Shown piece after piece: positions 7,288-64,000 of a stretch of DNA of 64,000 nucleotides. The notes under the pieces were generated by a model. The model ran no database searches, was not told where the DNA came from, and worked only from the letters and a program-made list of their open reading frames with translations. The position numbers and the translations under genes were made by a program. Positions within the stretch are counted from its first letter, which is position 1, and each line of letters begins with the position of its first letter. Origin of the DNA: Bugula neritina (lineage: Eukaryota; Animalia; Bryozoa); contig OZ037767.1 in the NCBI GenBank assembly GCA_964035545.1, positions 9,310,581 through 9,374,580 on the forward strand, read 5' to 3'.

Positions 7288-51007
<43,720 letters not shown>

Positions 51008-51363: not shown

Positions 51364-51761
51364 CTACCATTGTCTACCTATGGCAGAAGGACTTGCTCTA
51401 ATTGGCATACCTCTGCCTCCGCCCATCATTCCTCCGCCCATCATTCCCCCGCCCATCATCCCTCCGCCCATCATTCCCCCGCCCATCATCCCTCCGCCCA
51501 TCATTCCGCCACCCATCATGCTACTTGGTGTGGATCGAACACCTCCGGGCATAGACCTAGGTCCTCCCATCATACTAGGTGTGGCTCGAGGTCCTCCCAT
51601 CATACTTCCATGCATAGTTCGAGATCCACCCATCATACTGGGTGTAGCCCGAGGTCCTCCACCCATCATACTGGGTGTAGCCCGAGGTCCTCCCATCATC
51701 ATACTAGGTGTAGACCTAGGTCCTCCCATCATCATACTAGGTTGTGCACCCATCATCCCAC
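51364..51761 (-). CDS. Terminal exon encoding Gly/Met/Pro-Arg low-complexity repeats
   Basis: Acceptor tgattttag| at 51762; open frame with (GGPR[AS]TPSMM)-type and (GGGMM) repeats varying mainly at third codon positions; GC-rich relative to flanks; ends RASPSAIGRQW-stop. Confidence 0.8.
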
Positions 51762-54700
51762 CTAAAATCAATAGCTTTATGGTTTTGCGAGTTTCACAAT
51801 AATTGGTATTTTGGTATTATTACAAGAAAAAGCAAATGAAGTTGATTTACTTGCTGTAGAGGACACAAAATACCATAAGTGTATCATTCTACAAGCAAAC
51901 ATAACTTACTGTCACATCTGGTAACTACAATATGCTTTCTTGTTGAACAGTATCCAGGAGGATGTGCTAATTGTGCAAGGATACTAAATACTGTAGACAA
52001 CATGTTAATACTATACCATCTCTATATACTCATATTACACCATAGATATACCACCTCTATAATATACTACCGATACATTTACTGTATAACCACTCACTTG
52101 GTGACATAGCAGAGGGTCTATGACCTATAGAAGCTGATGGACCCACGGTGTAGGATGCATCTAATGTTCTACAAGTTTATAATCCGGAAATAGTTGAAGA
52201 TGAACATGTTTAGCATGAAGACTACTGCTGTGCAGTTTAGTGGTGCAACTTGTATATTAGAATAAGTAATCTCGGGCATTTGAAAAGTAGTAAATGAAAT
52301 GGTAAATAATTATATGAAATAACCAATTAGTTAATTTGAATAAATCATATCATGAAATGTACATTTAAACAAACAGTATAACATTATTTTATCATATTGG
52401 TTTAATGTCAATTCTTTTTTGTTTCACAAACAAAATTTGTTTCTAAATAACACATTGTATGTGTGGCAGTTAGTGTAATAAATAAATTTGCTCATGCTGT
52501 GCAGTTTGTTGGAAAAAAGAGTTATTTTAAGGAAATGAGACTTGTCTTCTCAATATAGATTAACTAAAAATTACACTTTTCCAAAATGCTATTTTTAGGA
52601 CAGGAGTTTTGAAAATGTATTTTTAGCTTCACTCTAATAAGTTGTAGATTTGTGTTATTTGTTGCAATAAAATAAAATAAAATATTCTTTTCTTACTCTT
52701 ATTTAATCATAAACACTCTAATGAAAGCCATCCATATTAAGCCTATCAAATTTTCTACTATTACAAAAACCCCATCTTCAAGGTGGCCAATCAAGAATGA
52801 CTCATTTCAAGTTTGCTTTCAAACCCACGGATGAAAAGTTACAGTTACAAACTCTTGCATGCACGCATAGCAGACTGTCTGGGAGTAGGCTGCACAATTA
52901 CTATCATTTCCTTAATTATACACACTAACACTATAATTACTTCTTCAGAGGTTGTCAACAGAATCTGTAGATATTTGTATCGAGACACGATTACACTTTA
53001 GCATACCAGAGCATTAACGTAATATTACTGTAATTATACGCAGCACCCTGAATTTCTGTATTGTGTAAATAATAATATTGTGTAACTCAGGGTATAACTG
53101 TAATGTATTATGCATAAGCAGTTGAAAACTTGTTATATATACGTGTATAGCTTACGCATTTAGTGCGCTATCCACTGGTTTCACATCTGGGGAGTTACTG
53201 AGGAGACAAAACACGCCTCCTAAGCACATGAGTAGGATGATTGTTCCGATTGCTATAAAATTAAAAAAGTTTAGATGCAAGCAGTAGAATCACTAGATAT
53301 ATATATATATATTGCTGTGTACACTGCAAGCATGGTGTATTTGACATAACACATAATACCGCGCAGTAAACATATTACCTATGCATTGTAGCGACAATAC
53401 TAAGTTGCTTTAACACACTGAATAAATATAATGTAAAATCCTATAAACCAAAATAACTTTTATGTAAATATCATAACACGCAAAAAACTATATTAGTATT
53501 TTTGTAATACTTACTAGCCCCAATAATGTACCCATAGTACAATTCAAAGAAGTTGGCAGCTAAAACACAATTAGTACATATGTATATCAGCATACTGTAA
53601 TTTCAAGATGCTGTATTGTAATAGTAGCTGCATATAATTTTCCTATATCATCATCTAATAACACAACAATCGCTTTAAATGTATTCACTCAGTTCTTTAG
53701 CAAAGGGCATGATTAGGTGTACCTAATACCCCCTTAGACGCACTTTAAAATATCAGCCAATTTTACAAATGTCTGAGCTTTTTGTACAGCGTTGCGATAT
53801 GTCAGGTTCAAGCACTGCTTGACTCAAAAAAGTTGCATCGGGCTCTTATTGGACAGAAAGACGCTCGCGTCAACTCAATGGATATAAATGTCCAAAGAGA
53901 TGTCATAGATCGTACCCAATAGCACACTTGAGAACTTCAGCCCGGACACATTAAAGATGGCTGACATTTTACGTTACGGCTTACGATGCAGCAAAGTGGG
54001 TCTAGGGGGTTGTAGTTACAGTTGCCTAATCTAGTCAAAATGTGTGGTGACCTCATTTTTACCTTTAATCATAAATATGAATTAGCGCAAATTACTCTTA
54101 ATGGTACTTATGTATTTTTTATCATTTGTCGTAGCTTGAATGATAATTAATATGTTTTCTGAAAGAAAACATATAGAAATTAAGAGAAATATATTATTAA
54201 TTATTGGAAAAGTTTATTTTACAGTAGCAAAAGCACTACTACCACTGTAAGCAACGATATTGACTTTAAATTAACCAGAGAAGTGTAATAAGCAAATGCT
54301 ATCACTATGACAATAGTCTAACCTTTACAGTTCTTGGAATCAACTGGTACTCTTTTTGAGAAGCATAGACATCTATATCCACCGTCAGTGTTTTCACATA
54401 TGTCACCACAAACTGGTGGTGTTGTGTCGCACTCGTTTACATCTGAAAGGCAACAAGGTGTATTTTTGCAACTCATCTGTTATTAAACAAAATTATTTGT
54501 AGTTATTTATACCACACAACCGCGCGCACACACATACACACGCACGCACGCACGCACGCACGCACGCACACACGCACACACGCACACAAACATGTGGAAG
54601 ATGAGTTAAATTAGAGCATTAACTCTATTTTTCAAATTTTTAAAATTTAAATCTAAATAATAACAAAGTCTAATAACTTTTATTCCTTATTTTAAAATCA

Positions 54701-55061
54701 GAAATTGGAGATTTTAGTAGAACAAAAAACCACTTATTTTGGTACAACATGTAAGAACACTTTTGCTAATTATACAATGACTGTACATCATACCTCTACA
54801 ATGTATATTTGAAGTTTGACTAAAGGCATAGCCTTCCGCGCATGTGCAGGTTGATGTATTGTTAGTCTGGGAAGAGCAAGGCGTTCCTTTAGATGCCGTT
54901 GCGTGACAAACGCAACTGACTACTTTTGATGAAGAGAGTGGGCAGTTTTGACACATCTCTCCCAATCTTCTCACAGTACCTTCCCTAATCGACGCCACCG
55001 AATTCACAATAGGCCAACAAGTAAATAGCAGCAGCAAAGCTGCATTCAATTTTCGATTCAT
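51364..55061 (-). CDS. Uncharacterised probable type-I membrane protein: signal peptide, Cys-rich module, calcium-binding EGF-like domain, probable TM helix, Gly/Met-rich low-complexity C-terminus
   Basis: Exon 55061-54794 (MNRKLNAALLLLFTCWPIVNSVAS...CTCAEGYAFSQTSNIHCR), 54442-54323 (DVNECDTTPPVCGDICENTDGGYRCLCFSKRVPVDSKNCK, cbEGF consensus), 53559-53515 (ANFFELYYGYIIGA), about 53399-53379, about 53219-53156 (GGVFCLLSNSPDVKPVDSALNA), 52168-52098 (TLDASYTVGPSASIGHRPSAMSP), 51761-51364 (GMMG/PRATPS repeats, TAG). Phases join. The middle small exons are the least certain part. Confidence 0.7.
53728..54010. mobile_element. MITE (about 283 bp) in an intron of the EGF gene
   Basis: TIRs acccccttagacgcacttt / aaagtgggtctagggggt plus subterminal inverted aaaatatcagcca / tggctgacatttt. 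Confidence 0.7.
54323..54442 (-). CDS. Calcium-binding EGF-like domain exon (phase 1-1)
   Basis: 120-nt symmetric exon, ttcag|...|gttag, encoding DVNEC-x6-C-x3-C-x-NTDGGYRC-x-C-x10-C. Confidence 0.9.
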
Positions 55062-56284: not shown

Positions 56285-57615
56285 GTTACTGCACACTCAT
56301 AAGGCTCAAAGTATACATCTTGAAAATCAGTGTCATCAATAAATACTCCTCTGTGTGAAATTCCTTGAGATGATTTGATTTCAAGAAAACAATAAAAGGA
56401 TTTAAGAATAGGAAGTGGTTTATTATCAATTAGGAACACACAGATAAACTAGCAACTATGATTTACTATAATTTGATTCTTGACATACTGTGCTATCTAC
56501 TATATGTGAAGTTGCATTAATTTCTCTTTCTAATATACTACAGTGTATAAAAATCTTCATTAGGCATACACTATACTACTGTAGACAACATTTATCTGTT
56601 CCATCACAGTATTTACCAACTTTGTGCCAAGTGTAGCCTTGTGTATTGGTAGTCTGTTACAGCAGACTAAAAGAATAATGTTCTTCTCATCTTTTGTGCT
56701 GTACTCTGAAATACCATTCACCTTGAACTAAAGGCTTCAAAGCCAGCAATTTATTTGTTTGGTTGCCAAAGAAATGCCTTATTAGGTAAAACTGTTTATA
56801 TGTAAGTTTATTAATATTCAAAAACTTTCACCTGTTTAGGCCATTTAAATAAGGACAACAACATTTCAGATGCAGATTATATTTTAGCTCTGTTATAACC
56901 ATTTATATTATCAGGAAGTTAGACTATATTTAAATTGTTGAAACTAGTTTTAATTGGTTAGTTGTGGCAGCCTAAAAGCACATGTTATGATTTGCAGAAA
57001 AGAAAATATTGATTTGTGGGAAAGTTTACTTCTACACAACTATAAAAGAAAACTGAATTTCTTTCATAAAATTTACACGCAGTATTGGTACTCTAGCAAA
57101 GAATAATGTACTAATAAAGAAATTGCTAAACTATTAAAGACTATTATTTTATCTGAAATAATCATTTTATTTAACAAAAGGTATGTATAAATACTCCAAA
57201 AAATTCTATTTTTAGGAATTATGCTTCCAATTTGCAGAAGATATGTCTGTATCCTTTCTGCTAGAGAGGTCTATTTTAATCTGTTTCATTAGTAGTAGCT
57301 CAAAACTACATAGAATACATGTTGTTGAGTATCATAATGTATGCAGTGTTTATGTGCATTCATTGGTGCTTAACTTACAGTGACAGGTTTTTTTAAATAT
57401 TTTATATATTGAAGAAGTCTCTTGACAACGCAAAAACTTTTTAATGTGTTTTTGGTAAATAATAAACAGAGATTCACACTAGCTTTAGACTCAATGCTGT
57501 TTGTAAAGTTGGACAGTCAGCAAAGTTCTGATTATTATGTCTGGTGAGATGCACTAGCTCGTCTTTGTACAGTTGTGACCACCTAACGTATGTTTTACAG
57601 GATTTTTGAAGGAAG

Positions 57616-58392
57616 ATGCTCACCATAAGGACTATGCTAGCCATAGCTGTTTTGTTCACTTTACTGATGTCGTCAGAGCTAACTGCTTTTAATCCTGTTA
57701 TCACAACTCCTATTTACGTGCCAAGTGGTGGTAGCAGAGAAAATGTTACCCGGAATATACAAGAGTATGTGTCAAGACTCGTGACTTACTACCAATGGAC
57801 CAACAGACCAAGGTAACATATTACACATACATACATGCATGCGTAAGTATGTACATATGCACATTATAGCACACGCATACTGTATACATGCATATGATAA
57901 TTATGCATTTGCATTACATACATAGTACGTATACAAATATACATGCATGTACACTTATGTGTACAGGTGTGTGCATGCGTGTGTAATATAATGCATAAAT
58001 ACTAATGTTCAAGTGAGTCTACAGAGTAAAACTATTATTGCAGATTTTCAAGAAGTAAAGGAGTCTCCAATTTTTAAATTTATATATTATATCCCTTGCA
58101 GCATGTTGTACACGTAGAATTCCCCATAGTTACTTCATATTCTATTTAAACTCTAATATTGGTAAACTTATAAAATGTTGATTAGCTAAATTTTTCAATT
58201 AGTTTGTGTAGCTCAGCATTTAGGGCGCTTCAGATCAAGGGCTAAAGTTTTACTATGGCTTTGGCATCACTCACTGTATGAAATCTAGACTGGCCAGTCA
58301 CTGTATAAAACCAATGCTGTGTCTGCAGGTTAGGCAAAAGAAGTCTATCTCACATATTTGGTTGGATCAAAAAACTTAGAAATCCGAGTTGA
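57616..58392 (+). CDS. NPF: NPY/NPF-like neuropeptide precursor 1 (predicted mature peptide FNPVITTPIYVPSGGSRENVTRNIQEYVSRLVTYYQWTNRPRL-amide)
   Basis: Exons 57616-57812 and 58329-58392. Signal peptide MLTIRTMLAIAVLFTLLMSSELTA; Tyr at -10 and -17 and Leu at -13 from the amidated end; RPR|L-G-KR with a phase-2 intron splitting the last Arg codon (AG|gtaac...ctgcag|G); short C-terminal peptide SLSHIFGWIKKLRNPS-stop; acceptor gttttacag| 15 nt upstream of the ATG implies a non-coding first exon. Confidence 0.88.
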
Positions 58393-60369
58393 AGAATCTC
58401 ATCCTTTCTATTTTTAGAACAAGGTTACAGACAGTTAAAATAGTTGACTATCTGTTATAGACATTTAACTGATTAGTATGTAATGTAAAACAGTTTTGAA
58501 TTGCATTGCTATATAATACAGTTTTGTAATTATTATGTGTATAAGGGAAATCTAAGAGTGAAAGGTAACTCAGTTTATTAGGGATTTGAAAATAACATTC
58601 AATAATGTATTTTGTGACTTGCAATTCAGGCATGAGTAAAATAAAAATCAATTACAATTGTCTAACACTTTTATTTTAATTTAATCTTAAGCAAGCTCAT
58701 TTCAAGCTGCACTCATAAGTCAAATAAGGAAAATACAAGTACACAATACAAAATGTACAATAATTTATATTCTTAGAAGTTTTAAAGTTGATTTCAGGCA
58801 TTCCTTTGTAAATAAAACAAAACATTAAATAGAGCTAAAATATGATAACATTGACTATTACAGTGACTATGTTTATAATTAAATTATATTATAAATATAA
58901 TTATATTATATTATTTTTAATGAACAGTTCTTTTTGTTAAAGGAAAATGAACAATCTACGTGTTCACTGCTTGCAATAAAAAGTTGATGTTATGTTGCAT
59001 TTCGTTAAAACTGAAAACATGTAGAAATAGCTTTTGCTTACATCTGGTGTAAATTGAAATTTCATATTATATTCTTTGTTAATGTGCATTATGGAAAGCA
59101 TAGTTGCGTAAAGTTGAGCCAGGGAGTGTTGGTATTGCTAGTACATCTGACTAAAAGTGTTAGTATTATCTAATATTACTAATACTACCTAAATTACTAG
59201 TCAATAGTTATATAATTTTGAATTTGGCAGTTGTCTTTCCTTGCCACGCATAGAGAGCACATTACTATAATTGAAGAAATTTAGCTTCAGGAATACGAAT
59301 TAAAGTGTGTGGATTGCATCATAACTAGAATAATATAAAGTTATATGAGACAGTTTGTGTGGAATAGAGTGGTACAGTTATATATGGAGCTTCTGGACAT
59401 ACAGATCTTGTGTGTAGATAGAGTTTGGTTATTGTGCAAGATTGTGAATGAATAGAAAAACTTAATGTCTTGGAGCATGTTAAATCTCAGCCCAGAATTT
59501 TAGACTGTGGAACACTGCCAGACAAATATCTTAGCCCGGGGTCCTAACTCTTTCTGCAGGTTGACAGGAGCTGGAGTTACCTCGATAGCTATAACAAGCC
59601 ATAACAAAAGTAACATCAACTGCTACTATTATTATCTGTAGTAATGTTAGTAATACTATACTATGATTACTAGTGCTACTTTTTATTCATATATATAGTG
59701 GTGCTAGAGATACATTGAGTGTCAAAGTTTTGTAATTTCCTGTCAAAAATTATAGTTTAAAAGGTTTTAGATATAAAAACCAAAAAAGCTAACAACATTT
59801 ACTAAACTCAACTAAAACTGCAATTAAATTGAACAACAGTTTATTTACTGTTAATTTGAAAATTATGAGGTTTTTAAAATTTAACCATCTTTCTTCATTT
59901 TTTTTAATTTTCAATACCATGCAAAATAAATATTCAAGTAATGCCACCCTGATTATTTTAAAATACTAGTTTTTATAAAAGATTAGTACATCTTATAATT
60001 ACAACACAGTCCAGCTCTATTTGGAATATAATTATTTGGGTTGCCACTATTAAATTGTGGGAGTTGTCAGCACTTTATAAATTTAAATTCTATTGTAATA
60101 ATTCATATTATTTCTACTATAGGCATGGCTAAATTTCACTAACGGTAACTATACTTTTAAAATAAGTCTCTTTCATGGGTAGGTTGGCTGAGAGAACTAG
60201 GTAGTTGGTTTTATAGATGCGGAACTTTCGCTTTGCTACTAACATCCATTAGAGAGTACAGGCGGCATCTCCAGAAATCGAAAGTGTTTTCGCATTTCTA
60301 TCAGGTGTGTGTGTTGGCTGTTGCTGTATGATGCGATCATTGCACGCATGTGTTGACAGCTAGGCAATG

Positions 60370-60632
60370 GATGTATTACATGTACTATTAGTGTGTATTG
60401 CATGTACTGTTAGTGGGCATTGCATGCACTATCAGTGTGTATTAAATGCACTACCAGTGTGCATTAAATGTACTACCAGCGTGTATTAAATACGCTACCA
60501 GTGTGTATTAAATACACTACCAGTGTGTATTGCATGCACTACCAGTGTGCATTGCATGCACTACCAGTGTGTATTACATACACTACCAGCGTGTATTACA
60601 CACACTACCAGTGTGTATTGCATGCACTACCA
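60370..60632. repeat. 22-bp minisatellite between the two NPF-like genes
   Basis: cactaccagtgtgtattgcatg units, x about 11. Confidence 0.9.
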
Positions 60633-60917
60633 TTTGGTCAAGAAGGAAATCTAGTTAGACATAGCAACATACTGTAGCCAGAAAGCAGGAAAACCTTGCT
60701 AAGTGAATGCAGCCATACAGAGTGTAAGCTTGACAATTCTATAAAGAAAAGTAATTAGATAGAGCATGCAATTGTTCTAGAACAAGCATTAATTATGCTT
60801 AACATCTTAAAATCAAAACAAAAATTAGCCTCCCATGTCTAATTACTTAATTTTCAGCCAAGGTTGTTCTGCAGGTATTGCATTGCTGTAATTAAGCATG
60901 ATAAATGTTGAGCTGTG

Positions 60918-61158
60918 ATTGGTCAATTATAACTAGCATTAATTAGGCAGCGGCCTAATGCTGTATAAAAGTTGAAAAATATTCTGTATAAAATTAGTTG
61001 GCTTCATTTTCTTGCCAAGCATTGGCTCATTAACCTAGAGCTATCTACCTTTCACAAGTATACAGTTACTGTTGAAGTGTTGAAGTGTTGAAGGGTTGAA
61101 GTGTTGAAGTGTTGAAAACTCAACTTGTTGCAAGTTTCTAGAGATATTTTATTAAGAG
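60918..61158 (+). promoter_or_regulatory. Candidate promoter and non-coding first exon of NPF-like gene 2
   Basis: GATTGG at about 60917, TATAAAA at about 60964 and about 60987, donor AAGAG|gtgagg at 61158/61159, acceptor tgttttag| at 61451; short (GTTGAAGT)n at 61071-61115. Confidence 0.5.
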
Positions 61159-61470
61159 GTGAGGGCTCTAACTTATTCATTCTGCTGTTATTTAGTAAGA
61201 AATTGAATTTTATAAGACAAGCAGGGATAATGCTGCCACTTTTAATTCATTTAATTATAGTTTTATTAGATCACCTAAATCCAATTACACTTATAATGAG
61301 AATTGATAGGTTGCCGGTCCACATAAGTGATGGGACTTGTATAATCATAGAGAGAAAACAGAAGTATATGAGTAGATTTGAGTAGATTCTCATTCACAGC
61401 TAGCATTCAATTTATTGACCAAAGTATATAAATATGTGTTTCGTGTTTTAGCATTGCTTCGAAGTCAAAA

Positions 61471-61916
61471 ATGAGACAAGGAATAGCTTGGCTTCCTATC
61501 TTCAGCACATTCACCTTTGTGGTGCTATACATGATAGAGCAGGCACACACTTTAGACATTGTAGTTCAGGGACCAACAACTCCTGCTAATGGATTTAGGA
61601 GCAGACAACAGCTAATAGATTTCCTGCGAAGACAGCACATGTACGACATTATCTCAAATGGTTCCAGGTGAGTAGCTTTCCTTTCTGACTACCTGCTTAC
61701 GTTCTGCTAATGCATGTTGCTGGCATGTCACAAAGTCTGTGTCATGGAATCTCTCTATTTCCAGACTTGGTAAAAGAGTTCCATCTGTACATGGAGGTAT
61801 TCCACAGTATACGGAGAGCACAACTCTATTAAATAGCTATGGTTATAATAGCAACAAGGGGCTGCTCTACAGTTTACTTACCAAACTTATACCAAAAGAT
61901 GACTCTAGGCCTCACT
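61471..61916 (+). CDS. NPF: Divergent NPY/NPF-like neuropeptide precursor 2 (predicted mature peptide ...GPTTPANGFRSRQQLIDFLRRQHMYDIISNGSRL-amide); 3' end uncertain
   Basis: Exons 61471-61667 and 61765-61916 (probable donor CACT|gtaagt; unspliced frame would end at 61993). Signal peptide; PxxPxxxFxSxxxLxxFL PP-fold pattern; Tyr -10, Phe -17, Leu -20; SR|L-G-KR with the same phase-2 intron in the Arg codon (AG|gtgag...ttccag|A). Confidence 0.8.
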
Positions 61917-64000
61917 GTAAGTTATCTGCCTTCAGAGGCATTATATTTTATTATATTTTACTTTATTTTATTGCTTACACTGCCTTCTTTTAGGTGCATA
62001 TGCACAAAATATTAATTTTAACAGCTTTTCTGTGAGCCATATTGTTTGTGTTTTAAACCAACCAAATCTACTGGTCTGATTGTCTGTTGGGCAAAATTAT
62101 CTGAAGTCCAGTTGTCTGTTGGGCGAGACTGTCTAGAGTCTGATTGTCTGTTGGTGGAGGTTGTCTGAAGTCTGATTGTTTTTAGTCTGGTTGTCGGGAC
62201 ATTTTACAAGCTGAAACAGATGACTCATAACAACGTGAAGTCATTAGGTTTAGCTATTGTCTTTAGGGTCTAGTGTAAACCATGGCTATATATCATAATG
62301 AATTCTAATCATTAAACATATTGTAATAATCTGTAATATGATGGTGAATAATTCACAAATACTTCAATCTCATTAATAACTGCACTCTCTAGCAGACTCA
62401 GAAACACTATAATGCTGCCTTAGGGTTACTGCTGACTTAGCAATAATTAGAACCATGTGGTACATGATGCAAGCCATTTAGTGCTAGCTGAGACTAAAGG
62501 CACTCATAGAACCCATTTAGCCAAGAACAACATACGTAGTAAACCCGTACACTAAACAAGTGTAGAGAATATTACCTCTGTACCTCTCTTGCTATTATTA
62601 CAAGGCTAAAGTATTTGTTAAGTAAAAACAGTAAAACTTTATAGAAGACATCACTGAACATTAGCTAGCCTAAAGTGGTAGACGACTCCTGTGACATTCT
62701 GCTTGATTCAACTGGATTGCTGCTAGCAATATGAATACTCAAGGGTGTACCCACATTATGTGACCTCCTCATTATTTGACTTGCATATCGGCACACTTTT
62801 TAAATGTTGAAGTAAATAAGTTTTTCGGCTGTTTCAAGTTAAAACAATATTTGAAAAGCATGCACTGAATTAGATGTGATGGTAATTTCAAACTTAGATA
62901 TAATTTTTTACATAAAGTTTACACAATTGTGCTTTGCGCTATAAATAGACTACAGATGGCAGCAGCTTTATGTCAATTAAAAGTATGAGCTGCTAAGTTA
63001 AAAAGTAAAGCTGTTGTGTTATTTTTGTCTTGTAGTACTATTTGTTTAGTAAACCACTTGATATCAATTGATTAGCAATAATGGCTGTAAAATCTCCATA
63101 TTTTATTTCAACTTAAACTTGGAAGTTTGGTCCATAAAAGCAAAGCTTTACATAAACTGCTCCAATATGACGTCTAATAGCGGCTATAGCATACGTTGTT
63201 AGAGGTGGTTAAAGAGTGATAAAGTGTGTGTGACACAGTTTTTATGCAAGCAATTTTCCTTCAGCACTTGGTCATAAACAGAAAAATATACGTTTCTAAC
63301 AATGATGAAAGAATAAGCTGAGAGGCTGTAGGGTTGTGACTATGTGAGAGGGTAGAGAGACTGTCCCCATCAAGGTGCAGGAAATATACTATTAGATAAT
63401 ACTCAGAAGGTTAGGTTACGCCCAAAGCAATTGAGCAGGCAGCTTTAAAACAGTTTCGCTATAATATCATGATTTTTGAATAGGATGAGAGCCAGGAGTA
63501 ATAGTGTTCAGGTATTCAAGACTAAGACCCGTCTGCTTTGGTCTTCTCAGGGTTTTCAGACCAGAAAACCGGGTCCAATAATATTTTCCTTGAAGTTGAG
63601 CTTATAGTAACTTGAGGTGATATTGACTCGGGTCATTAGATAAATCATAGTAATAAAGGGCAATTACTAGTACTATGTTAGCTGGGTATCCACAGCACAT
63701 AACTGCACTCTAGAGGTCGGGGTGGTGTAGACACCCACAGTTTGTAGACATCTTGCACTCAGTCTTGCTGCATAATTACAGGCCGTTGTGCAAAATGTTG
63801 ATGAAGTAAATTACAGGTGAATCCTGTATAACTGGAAACCATTGTTTCAATTCGCAGACTTCACTGAATGAATATGTCCCTGGAGTGTCATTGACTAGCC
63901 TAGTCGCATTTCTACCTTTCTTTTATTTTCTTTGTTCTAGGATCCTGGGCCAAGATTAAATCTGATCACACAACCTTCTCTCAGCAGCTGGTGATATAAT

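Follow-up and report, generated by a model that had tools for sequence, protein, structure and literature searches.

A 64-kb window of contig C3 of the 216-Mb Bugula neritina complex assembly (64,000 nucleotides, the whole stretch of DNA analysed, in whose positions the coordinates below are given) contains a tandem pair of predicted neuropeptide precursor genes, here called gene 1 and gene 2, which gene structure, family affinity and purifying selection identify, at the level of sequence, as divergent paralogues of the neuropeptide F (NPF) type within the NPY superfamily. The two genes, apparently previously undescribed, lie where a preliminary description of this DNA had drawn them and have the layout it gave them: a signal peptide, a peptide of 43 (gene 1) or 40 (gene 2) residues, a phase-2 intron splitting the last Arg codon and, after the predicted splice, a Leu-Gly-Lys-Arg amidation and cleavage site (Table 1). 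For comparison we used a sibling Bugula form represented by public contigs, about 10% diverged in non-coding DNA, of which one (L008) covers exon 1 of gene 1 and three (L061-L063) cover all of gene 2.

Both first coding exons are 197 nt long (65 codons followed by AG), reaching from the ATG at 57616 to 57812 in gene 1 and from the ATG at 61471 to 61667 in gene 2. Exon 2 of gene 1 starts G-TTA-GGC-AAA-AGA, giving R-L-G-K-R, and is closed by a stop codon at 58390-92, with AATAAA signals further 3' at 58640 and 58811; that of gene 2 starts A-CTT-GGT-AAA-AGA. The predicted mature peptides end in RPRL-amide (gene 1) and GSRL-amide (gene 2) and have aromatic residues at positions -10/-17 (Y/Y for gene 1, Y/F for gene 2). 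The signal peptides were assigned on hydrophobicity and the -3/-1 rule alone; the -1 residue of gene 2 is Thr in the window and Ser in the sibling. The 3' end of gene 2 probably contains a further intron at 61917-61993, the alternative being a hydrophobic, anchor-like tail read through to the TAG at 61991-93. BnNPFL, the published B. neritina NPF (KX095879 / ANW11179; PMC4990251), has a donor at a place similar to the 61917 donor of gene 2, and its cDNA-derived protein runs past it. Two further features of the precursors may be recorded here: an N-x-T glycosylation sequon at 57742-57750 of gene 1, kept in both Bugula forms, and an internal Arg-Arg in gene 2 (61615-61620), cleavage at which could free a 13-residue pyroglutamyl amide.

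Table 1. Predicted features of the two NPF-type precursor genes (window positions; UTR, untranslated region).
Feature	Position	Strand	Observations
Gene 1, probable 5'-UTR intron	57544..57600	+	GTGAGA donor, CTAAC branch-like site and TACAG acceptor, all three kept in L008; inferred
Gene 1, signal peptide, ~24 aa	57616..57687	+	Translation; hydrophobicity 2.8 over 12 residues; cleavage site inferred
Gene 1, mature NPF-like peptide, exon 1 part	57688..57812	+	Ends with first two bases of Arg codon
Gene 1, phase-2 intron splitting last Arg codon	57813..58328	+	516 nt, GTAACA..TGCAG; donor kept in L008
Gene 1, exon 2	58329..58392	+	R/L-G-K-R amidation/cleavage site, 16-aa flanking peptide, stop
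Gene 2, TATA-like boxes and probable non-coding first exon	60964..61158	+	Boxes at 60964 and 60987; sequence; inferred
Gene 2, probable 5'-UTR intron	61159-61451	+	Donor and acceptor kept in L061; inferred
Gene 2, signal peptide, ~27 aa	61471..61551	+	Translation; cleavage site inferred
Gene 2, mature NPF-like peptide, exon 1 part	61552..61667	+	Ends with first two bases of Arg codon
Gene 2, phase-2 intron splitting last Arg codon	61668..61764	+	97 nt, GTGAGT..TTCCAG; donor and acceptor identical in L061-L063
Gene 2, exon 2	61765..61916	+	R/L-G-K-R site and BnNPFL-like flanking peptide; LGKR kept in sibling
Gene 2, probable second intron	61917..61993	+	GTAAGT..TTTTAG; alternative, read-through hydrophobic tail

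A filter for the full architecture returned two sites in the window, exactly gene 1 and gene 2, and none in 300 Markov-simulated 64-kb windows. All searches were made exon by exon rather than with joined spliced proteins, and in the genome search only the best candidates were scored. In a genome-wide check for further split-codon RL-GKR precursors, as the preliminary description had proposed, the acceptor motif by itself occurs at chance level, so that significance is confined to the combined architecture; the nine other genome-wide matches to the acceptor pattern have no NPF-type exon within 1.5 kb upstream. An acceptor-like site followed by L/F-G-K-R and an open frame was also seen at three loci (L059, C8:8183534, minus strand; L058, C5:1743478; L051, C2:588449), each of which may be the second exon of a further amidated-peptide gene whose intron is long, or may be chance.

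Both genes are retained under purifying selection, in keeping with the retention first proposed. The ratio of nonsynonymous to synonymous change (pN/pS) in exon 1 against the sibling is about 0.2 (0.21 for gene 1 with L008 and 0.19 for gene 2; Fisher p 4e-5 combined), and coding exon 1 of either gene has no indel, while introns and flanks have many: the gene 1 intron is 87% identical to L008 with nine indels, compared with 95% and none for exon 1, and the gene 2 intron is likewise 87% identical to its counterpart, with one indel. Residue -3 of the peptide differs between the sibling forms in both genes (P/S in gene 1, S/A in gene 2). The split codon of gene 2 is AG|A in the window and CG|A in the sibling, Arg either way, a change that is silent in the spliced frame only and hence supports the gene 2 splice junction. 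Both genes would be spliced within the Arg codon, and the same type of junction, confirmed by rapid amplification of cDNA ends, gives PVRF-GKR in the paralogue BnNPFL (PMC4990251). Separately, the segment 61765-61993 differs from the sibling contig at only 7 of 229 nt, counting synonymous sites, where nearby sequence differs by 8-13% (binomial p 6e-5 for a rate of 10%). That either gene, or the two together, should be a silent relic or have arisen by chance is extremely improbable. They were not recovered when a larval transcriptome was mined in 2016 on the basis of BLAST to known peptides (PMC4990251), and their models come from genomic DNA alone, but relics are hard to reconcile with purifying selection and with frames and splice sites that are preserved in a sibling diverged by some 10%, and the simulated windows put a chance arrangement at less than 1 in 300.

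The Arg-codon intron is, as the preliminary description held, a hallmark of NPY/NPF genes (PMC8536682, PMC2953531), one that separates them from the PrRP type (PMC7314547). Both genes have this phase-2 intron and the aromatic residues at -10/-17, and a signal peptide leading directly into a single 43- or 40-residue peptide followed by GKR falls within the NPY/NPF layout of some 36-48 residues. Neither has the RxR(F/Y)-amide ending, RPRL and GSRL standing in its place, and for this reason we file them as atypical NPY-superfamily paralogues, like npy-11 of the planarian Schmidtea mediterranea. Membership of the PrRP or short NPF (sNPF) families was considered and rejected on the phase-2 intron at the C-terminal Arg and the single long peptide, PrRP genes having a phase-1 intron in the N-terminal or central part of the peptide and sNPF precursors several short copies (PMC7314547).

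The NPY/NPF descent originally suggested is borne out by sequence affinity as well as by the architecture filter. A position matrix built from six non-Bugula NPFs only gave shuffle z-scores of 6.2 for gene 1 and 5.5 for gene 2; over 118,656 stop-free 25-mers (296 kb of genome) it put two NPF genes on contig C4 at ranks 1 and 2 and the window genes at ranks 3 and 4, with each of the four 25-mers ending exactly at an AG|GT donor. The top ESM Atlas neighbours of gene 1 are NPF/PP/NPY clusters, at lead level only (0.80), the flanking peptide of gene 2 resembles that of the C4 NPF BnNPFL (p=0.006, shuffling), and a profile of the four Bugula genes run against the PDB had peptide YY as six of its seven matches (E 0.3-0.8). 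AlphaFold predicts for both peptides an extended N-terminus and a C-terminal helix (residues 17-38 in gene 1, 18-35 in gene 2; pLDDT ~70), placed as in NPY.

Pyrokinins also end in PRL-amide, as gene 1 does, and RL-amide is the ending of myomodulins. Convergence on PRX-amide (pyrokinin/NMU-type) or on myomodulin-type (LRL-amide) signalling, through a different receptor family, is nonetheless very improbable, as the sibling contig of gene 1 (P0001) has Ser in place of the Pro and gene 2 has no Pro, observations on which membership of the PRX-amide family was rejected; a long helical peptide in single copy with an intron in the Arg codon is, moreover, of NPY type and not of pyrokinin type.

Genome searches found four NPF-type genes, namely the window pair and a second tandem pair on C4 (L001 and L002, G000:C4:19876244-19885568, minus strand, about 9 kb apart). 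L001 is the BnNPFL orthologue, ending in PVRF-amide and differing from the published BnNPFL by few substitutions. In L002, the C4b paralogue, the acceptor leads into Ser-Lys-Arg and the peptide would end Ser-Val-Ser; no micro-exon restoring Phe-Gly was found in this paralogue, which without Phe-Gly after the intron cannot be amidated. The canonical RxR(F/Y)-amide ending is therefore present in none of the four genes. The window genes were first read as a duplicated subfamily sharing one Phe-to-Leu change. That they are a paralogous NPF pair, strongly diverged (21% identity), stands; a single origin of the Leu is not established, as a tree test of the window pair as one group decides neither way (approximately unbiased test, p 0.41 vs 0.59). 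The two genes are adjacent, have exons of equal length, and share a longer hydrophobic N-terminus and an Asn at -5, all of which point to a single origin. Pointing away from it are the low identity, a similarity between gene 1 and gene 2 no higher than that of each to the C4 NPFs, the undecided tree, and Leu codons (TTA in gene 1, CTT in gene 2) each one step from Phe TTT.

The Leu-amide is less of a novelty than the preliminary description supposed. Planarian npy-11, published as an 'atypical neuropeptide Y', has no terminal aromatic and shares the intron (PMC2953531); like gene 1 it ends in RPRL followed by GKR, with the Arg codon split, in a lineage-expanded NPY set (PMC2953531). Unlike the Bugula genes, however, npy-11 is the sole such gene beside ten canonical genes, and the planarian genome has 16 NPY-like receptors (PMC4862687), while no canonical gene was found among Bugula's four and gene 2 also has no Arg at -4. 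The Leu-amides of planarian and bryozoan are probably convergent. Leu for the terminal aromatic is met again in two unrelated lineages, in Leucoraja ocellata NPY (QRL-GKR, a single unverified database record) and in P0022 (KPRL-G), which has an uninterrupted two-peptide precursor. The eukaryotic precursor P0022/P0030 (L064, L065) carries two peptides of NPF type, one ending KPRH-G and the other KPRL-G, together with a tail resembling an EF-hand.

Among known systems BnNPFL agrees with the window genes in lineage, intron, precursor layout and aromatics at -10/-17, but is shorter (35 residues), ends in PVRF-amide and lies near the PF00159 cut-off, the window genes being longer and Leu-ending. 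Abalone Hdh-NPF and phoronid NPF (RPRF-amide) have the same single peptide of 36-48 residues, GKR and Arg-codon intron, and canonical lophotrochozoan NPFs also share the signal peptide and the conserved hydrophobic helix face (PMC8536682, PMC6389622); the window genes differ from them in having Leu for the terminal Phe and, in gene 2, no first Arg. Flatworms, annelids and abalone are known to have lineage-specific expansions of NPF genes as well as tandem pairs (PMC2953531, PMC6389622, PMC8536682). The one published survey of Bugula neuropeptides (PMC4990251) does not contain gene 1 or gene 2, and in a literature of which our coverage is incomplete we found neither an NPF ending in GSRL-amide nor an account of either gene. 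The Leu ending alone thus repeats a known oddity; it is more unusual that all four Bugula NPF genes break the family signature and that no standard receptor was found.

On the receptor side, two intronless NPY-like genes were found, L030 (C2:13048861-13050081) and L035 (C1:24406004-24406915), whose products are 45% identical and have human Y2 as their best PDB match; two queries brought up no further receptor with a similar level of match. One of the genome's receptors shows 98% identity to B. neritina KAF6025000. Among named sequences L030 and L035 are closest to a 415-aa sNPF receptor of abalone and to sNPF receptors of beetles, and we therefore take them to be of sNPF type, on a tree and queries that held no true NPF receptor as reference. 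In that quick tree, which carries long-branch warnings, they fall on two branches within a clade shared with two Watersipora receptors, apparently a bryozoan duplication. The co-evolved receptor envisaged in the preliminary description is not demonstrated by this pair: Leu instead of Gln at 3.32 might have indicated co-evolution, but we discarded it because Leu is the norm at this position in lophotrochozoan matches. As leads only, position 6.52 is acidic in both receptors and Asn in the non-bryozoan matches, and 6.59, a position at which 93 of the 122 receptors aligned have an acidic residue, is Lys in L035. L027 (galanin/allatostatin-A-like) and L031 (tachykinin-group-like) were rejected as NPF receptors. 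At least 21 sequences in the genome match the Srw-type profile PF10324, which we take to cover the receptor group of an NPF-activated Platynereis receptor outside the NPY clade. Activation of such a receptor by Platynereis NPFs is documented, as is a variant NPF without clear receptor in hymenopterans (PMC6389622), and no NPY/F receptor is reported in phoronid data (PMC8557429).

We consider it likely that both genes are functional, divergent NPF paralogues encoding secreted, amidated helical hormones that are read by a candidate G-protein-coupled receptor (GPCR). Transcription and splicing would join the split Arg codon to Leu-Gly-Lys-Arg, the precursor would enter the secretory pathway, a prohormone convertase would cut after Lys-Arg, carboxypeptidase E would trim the end and PAM would convert the Gly to the amide, convertase, carboxypeptidase and PAM being the standard route to amidated peptides. 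The hormones released would be the 43-residue RPRL-amide and the 40-residue GSRL-amide, each extended at its N-terminus and forming an amphipathic helix towards its C-terminus, and the Arg-Leu-amide end would enter a rhodopsin-type GPCR, candidates being the sNPF-type pair L030/L035 and the FMRFamide/NPY-4/myomodulin-type clade. By analogy with other members of the family, a role in feeding, energy balance or reproduction is likely. From splicing, processing and secretion to receptor and role, we infer these properties of the two products.

Several observations weigh against this interpretation. The gene models and peptides are known from genomic DNA alone, and the comparison of gene 1 with the second form excludes exon 2, which lies outside L008. 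The Pfam search put forward in the preliminary description as a check of family failed for both genes, PF00159 missing exon 1 of each even at E 10, with a query that stops short of the final R-x and with an accepted member, BnNPFL, itself just under the cut-off (28.3 vs 28.7 bits). An ESM Atlas search with gene 2 had no NPY match, single-sequence PDB and fold searches with both peptides had no match, the PP-fold (a polyproline strand packed on a helix) included, nor had metagenome scans with gene 1, and in a search of 1.84 billion representatives no orthologue outside Bugula reached E 0.001. Two queries run per exon brought up no NPF-type receptor, in a search where several exon matches of 35-41% could hide an intron-split one.

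It is possible, if rather doubtful, that the system has been rewired, the canonical NPF receptor having been lost and the NPF peptides, released from the RxRF constraint, signalling via duplicated sNPF-type receptors or receptors of the NPY-4/myomodulin clade, a reading that refines that of functional NPF paralogues rather than competing with it. It is favoured by a set of four non-canonical NPF genes, by the finding of only two NPY-like receptors, both of sNPF type, by the acidic 6.52 in both and Lys 6.59 in L035, by the 21 PF10324 matches and by precedents in phoronids (PMC8557429) and in Platynereis and hymenopterans (PMC6389622). However, it depends on a negative, best-candidate, per-exon search from which an intron-split NPF receptor could hide, with no true NPF receptor as query or tree reference, and L030/L035 may simply serve an sNPF/LFRFamide ligand. 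Its extension to cheilostome bryozoans as a whole, with the canonical receptor lost and a motif-breaking NPF set re-paired with duplicated sNPF-type or other receptors, is more speculative still and should be regarded as unlikely.

It is improbable that the NPF-derived peptides, having lost the aromatic amide that anchors the receptor, are weak agonists or antagonists, or non-neural secreted peptides. The long branches, at about two changes per site, the variation of residue -3 between siblings in both genes, the apparent complete loss of the amide in the C4b paralogue and the expression of planarian npy-11 in the pharynx (PMC2953531) would all suit this account, but Arg, Leu and GKR are kept in the gene 2 sibling and exon 1 is under purifying selection, as for an amide end that is read by a receptor.

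A VPS13 gene and a small EGF-domain gene lie upstream of the pair of functional NPF paralogues proposed here. The former is a multi-exon plus-strand gene at about 8000-49800 (PF25033 and PF25037), with an in-frame five-fold repeat in an exon near 40584-40845. The latter, on the minus strand at 51364-55061, has a signal peptide and a calcium-binding EGF exon at 54324-54452 (PF07645), and a Met/Gly-rich repeat frame at 51364-51771 (periods of 15 and 33 nt) may be its last exon. Downstream, minus-strand frames resembling TADA3 and TADA2-type exons (L014-L016, C3:9374001-9404000) are presumably usable as synteny anchors. Neither the window nor the 30 kb downstream of it showed a third copy.

Gene 1 and gene 2 extend the poorly known neuropeptide set of bryozoans, and because such genes are invisible to Pfam a search by gene structure is needed to find them. 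With four divergent NPF ligands, a pair of sNPF-type receptors and no NPF receptor found, Bugula offers a small, closed system for deorphanisation, and its NPF set bears on how a near-invariant hormone motif escapes constraint. If cheilostomes have indeed re-paired these peptides, ligands and receptors would have been swapped in nature between two ancient systems, NPF and sNPF.

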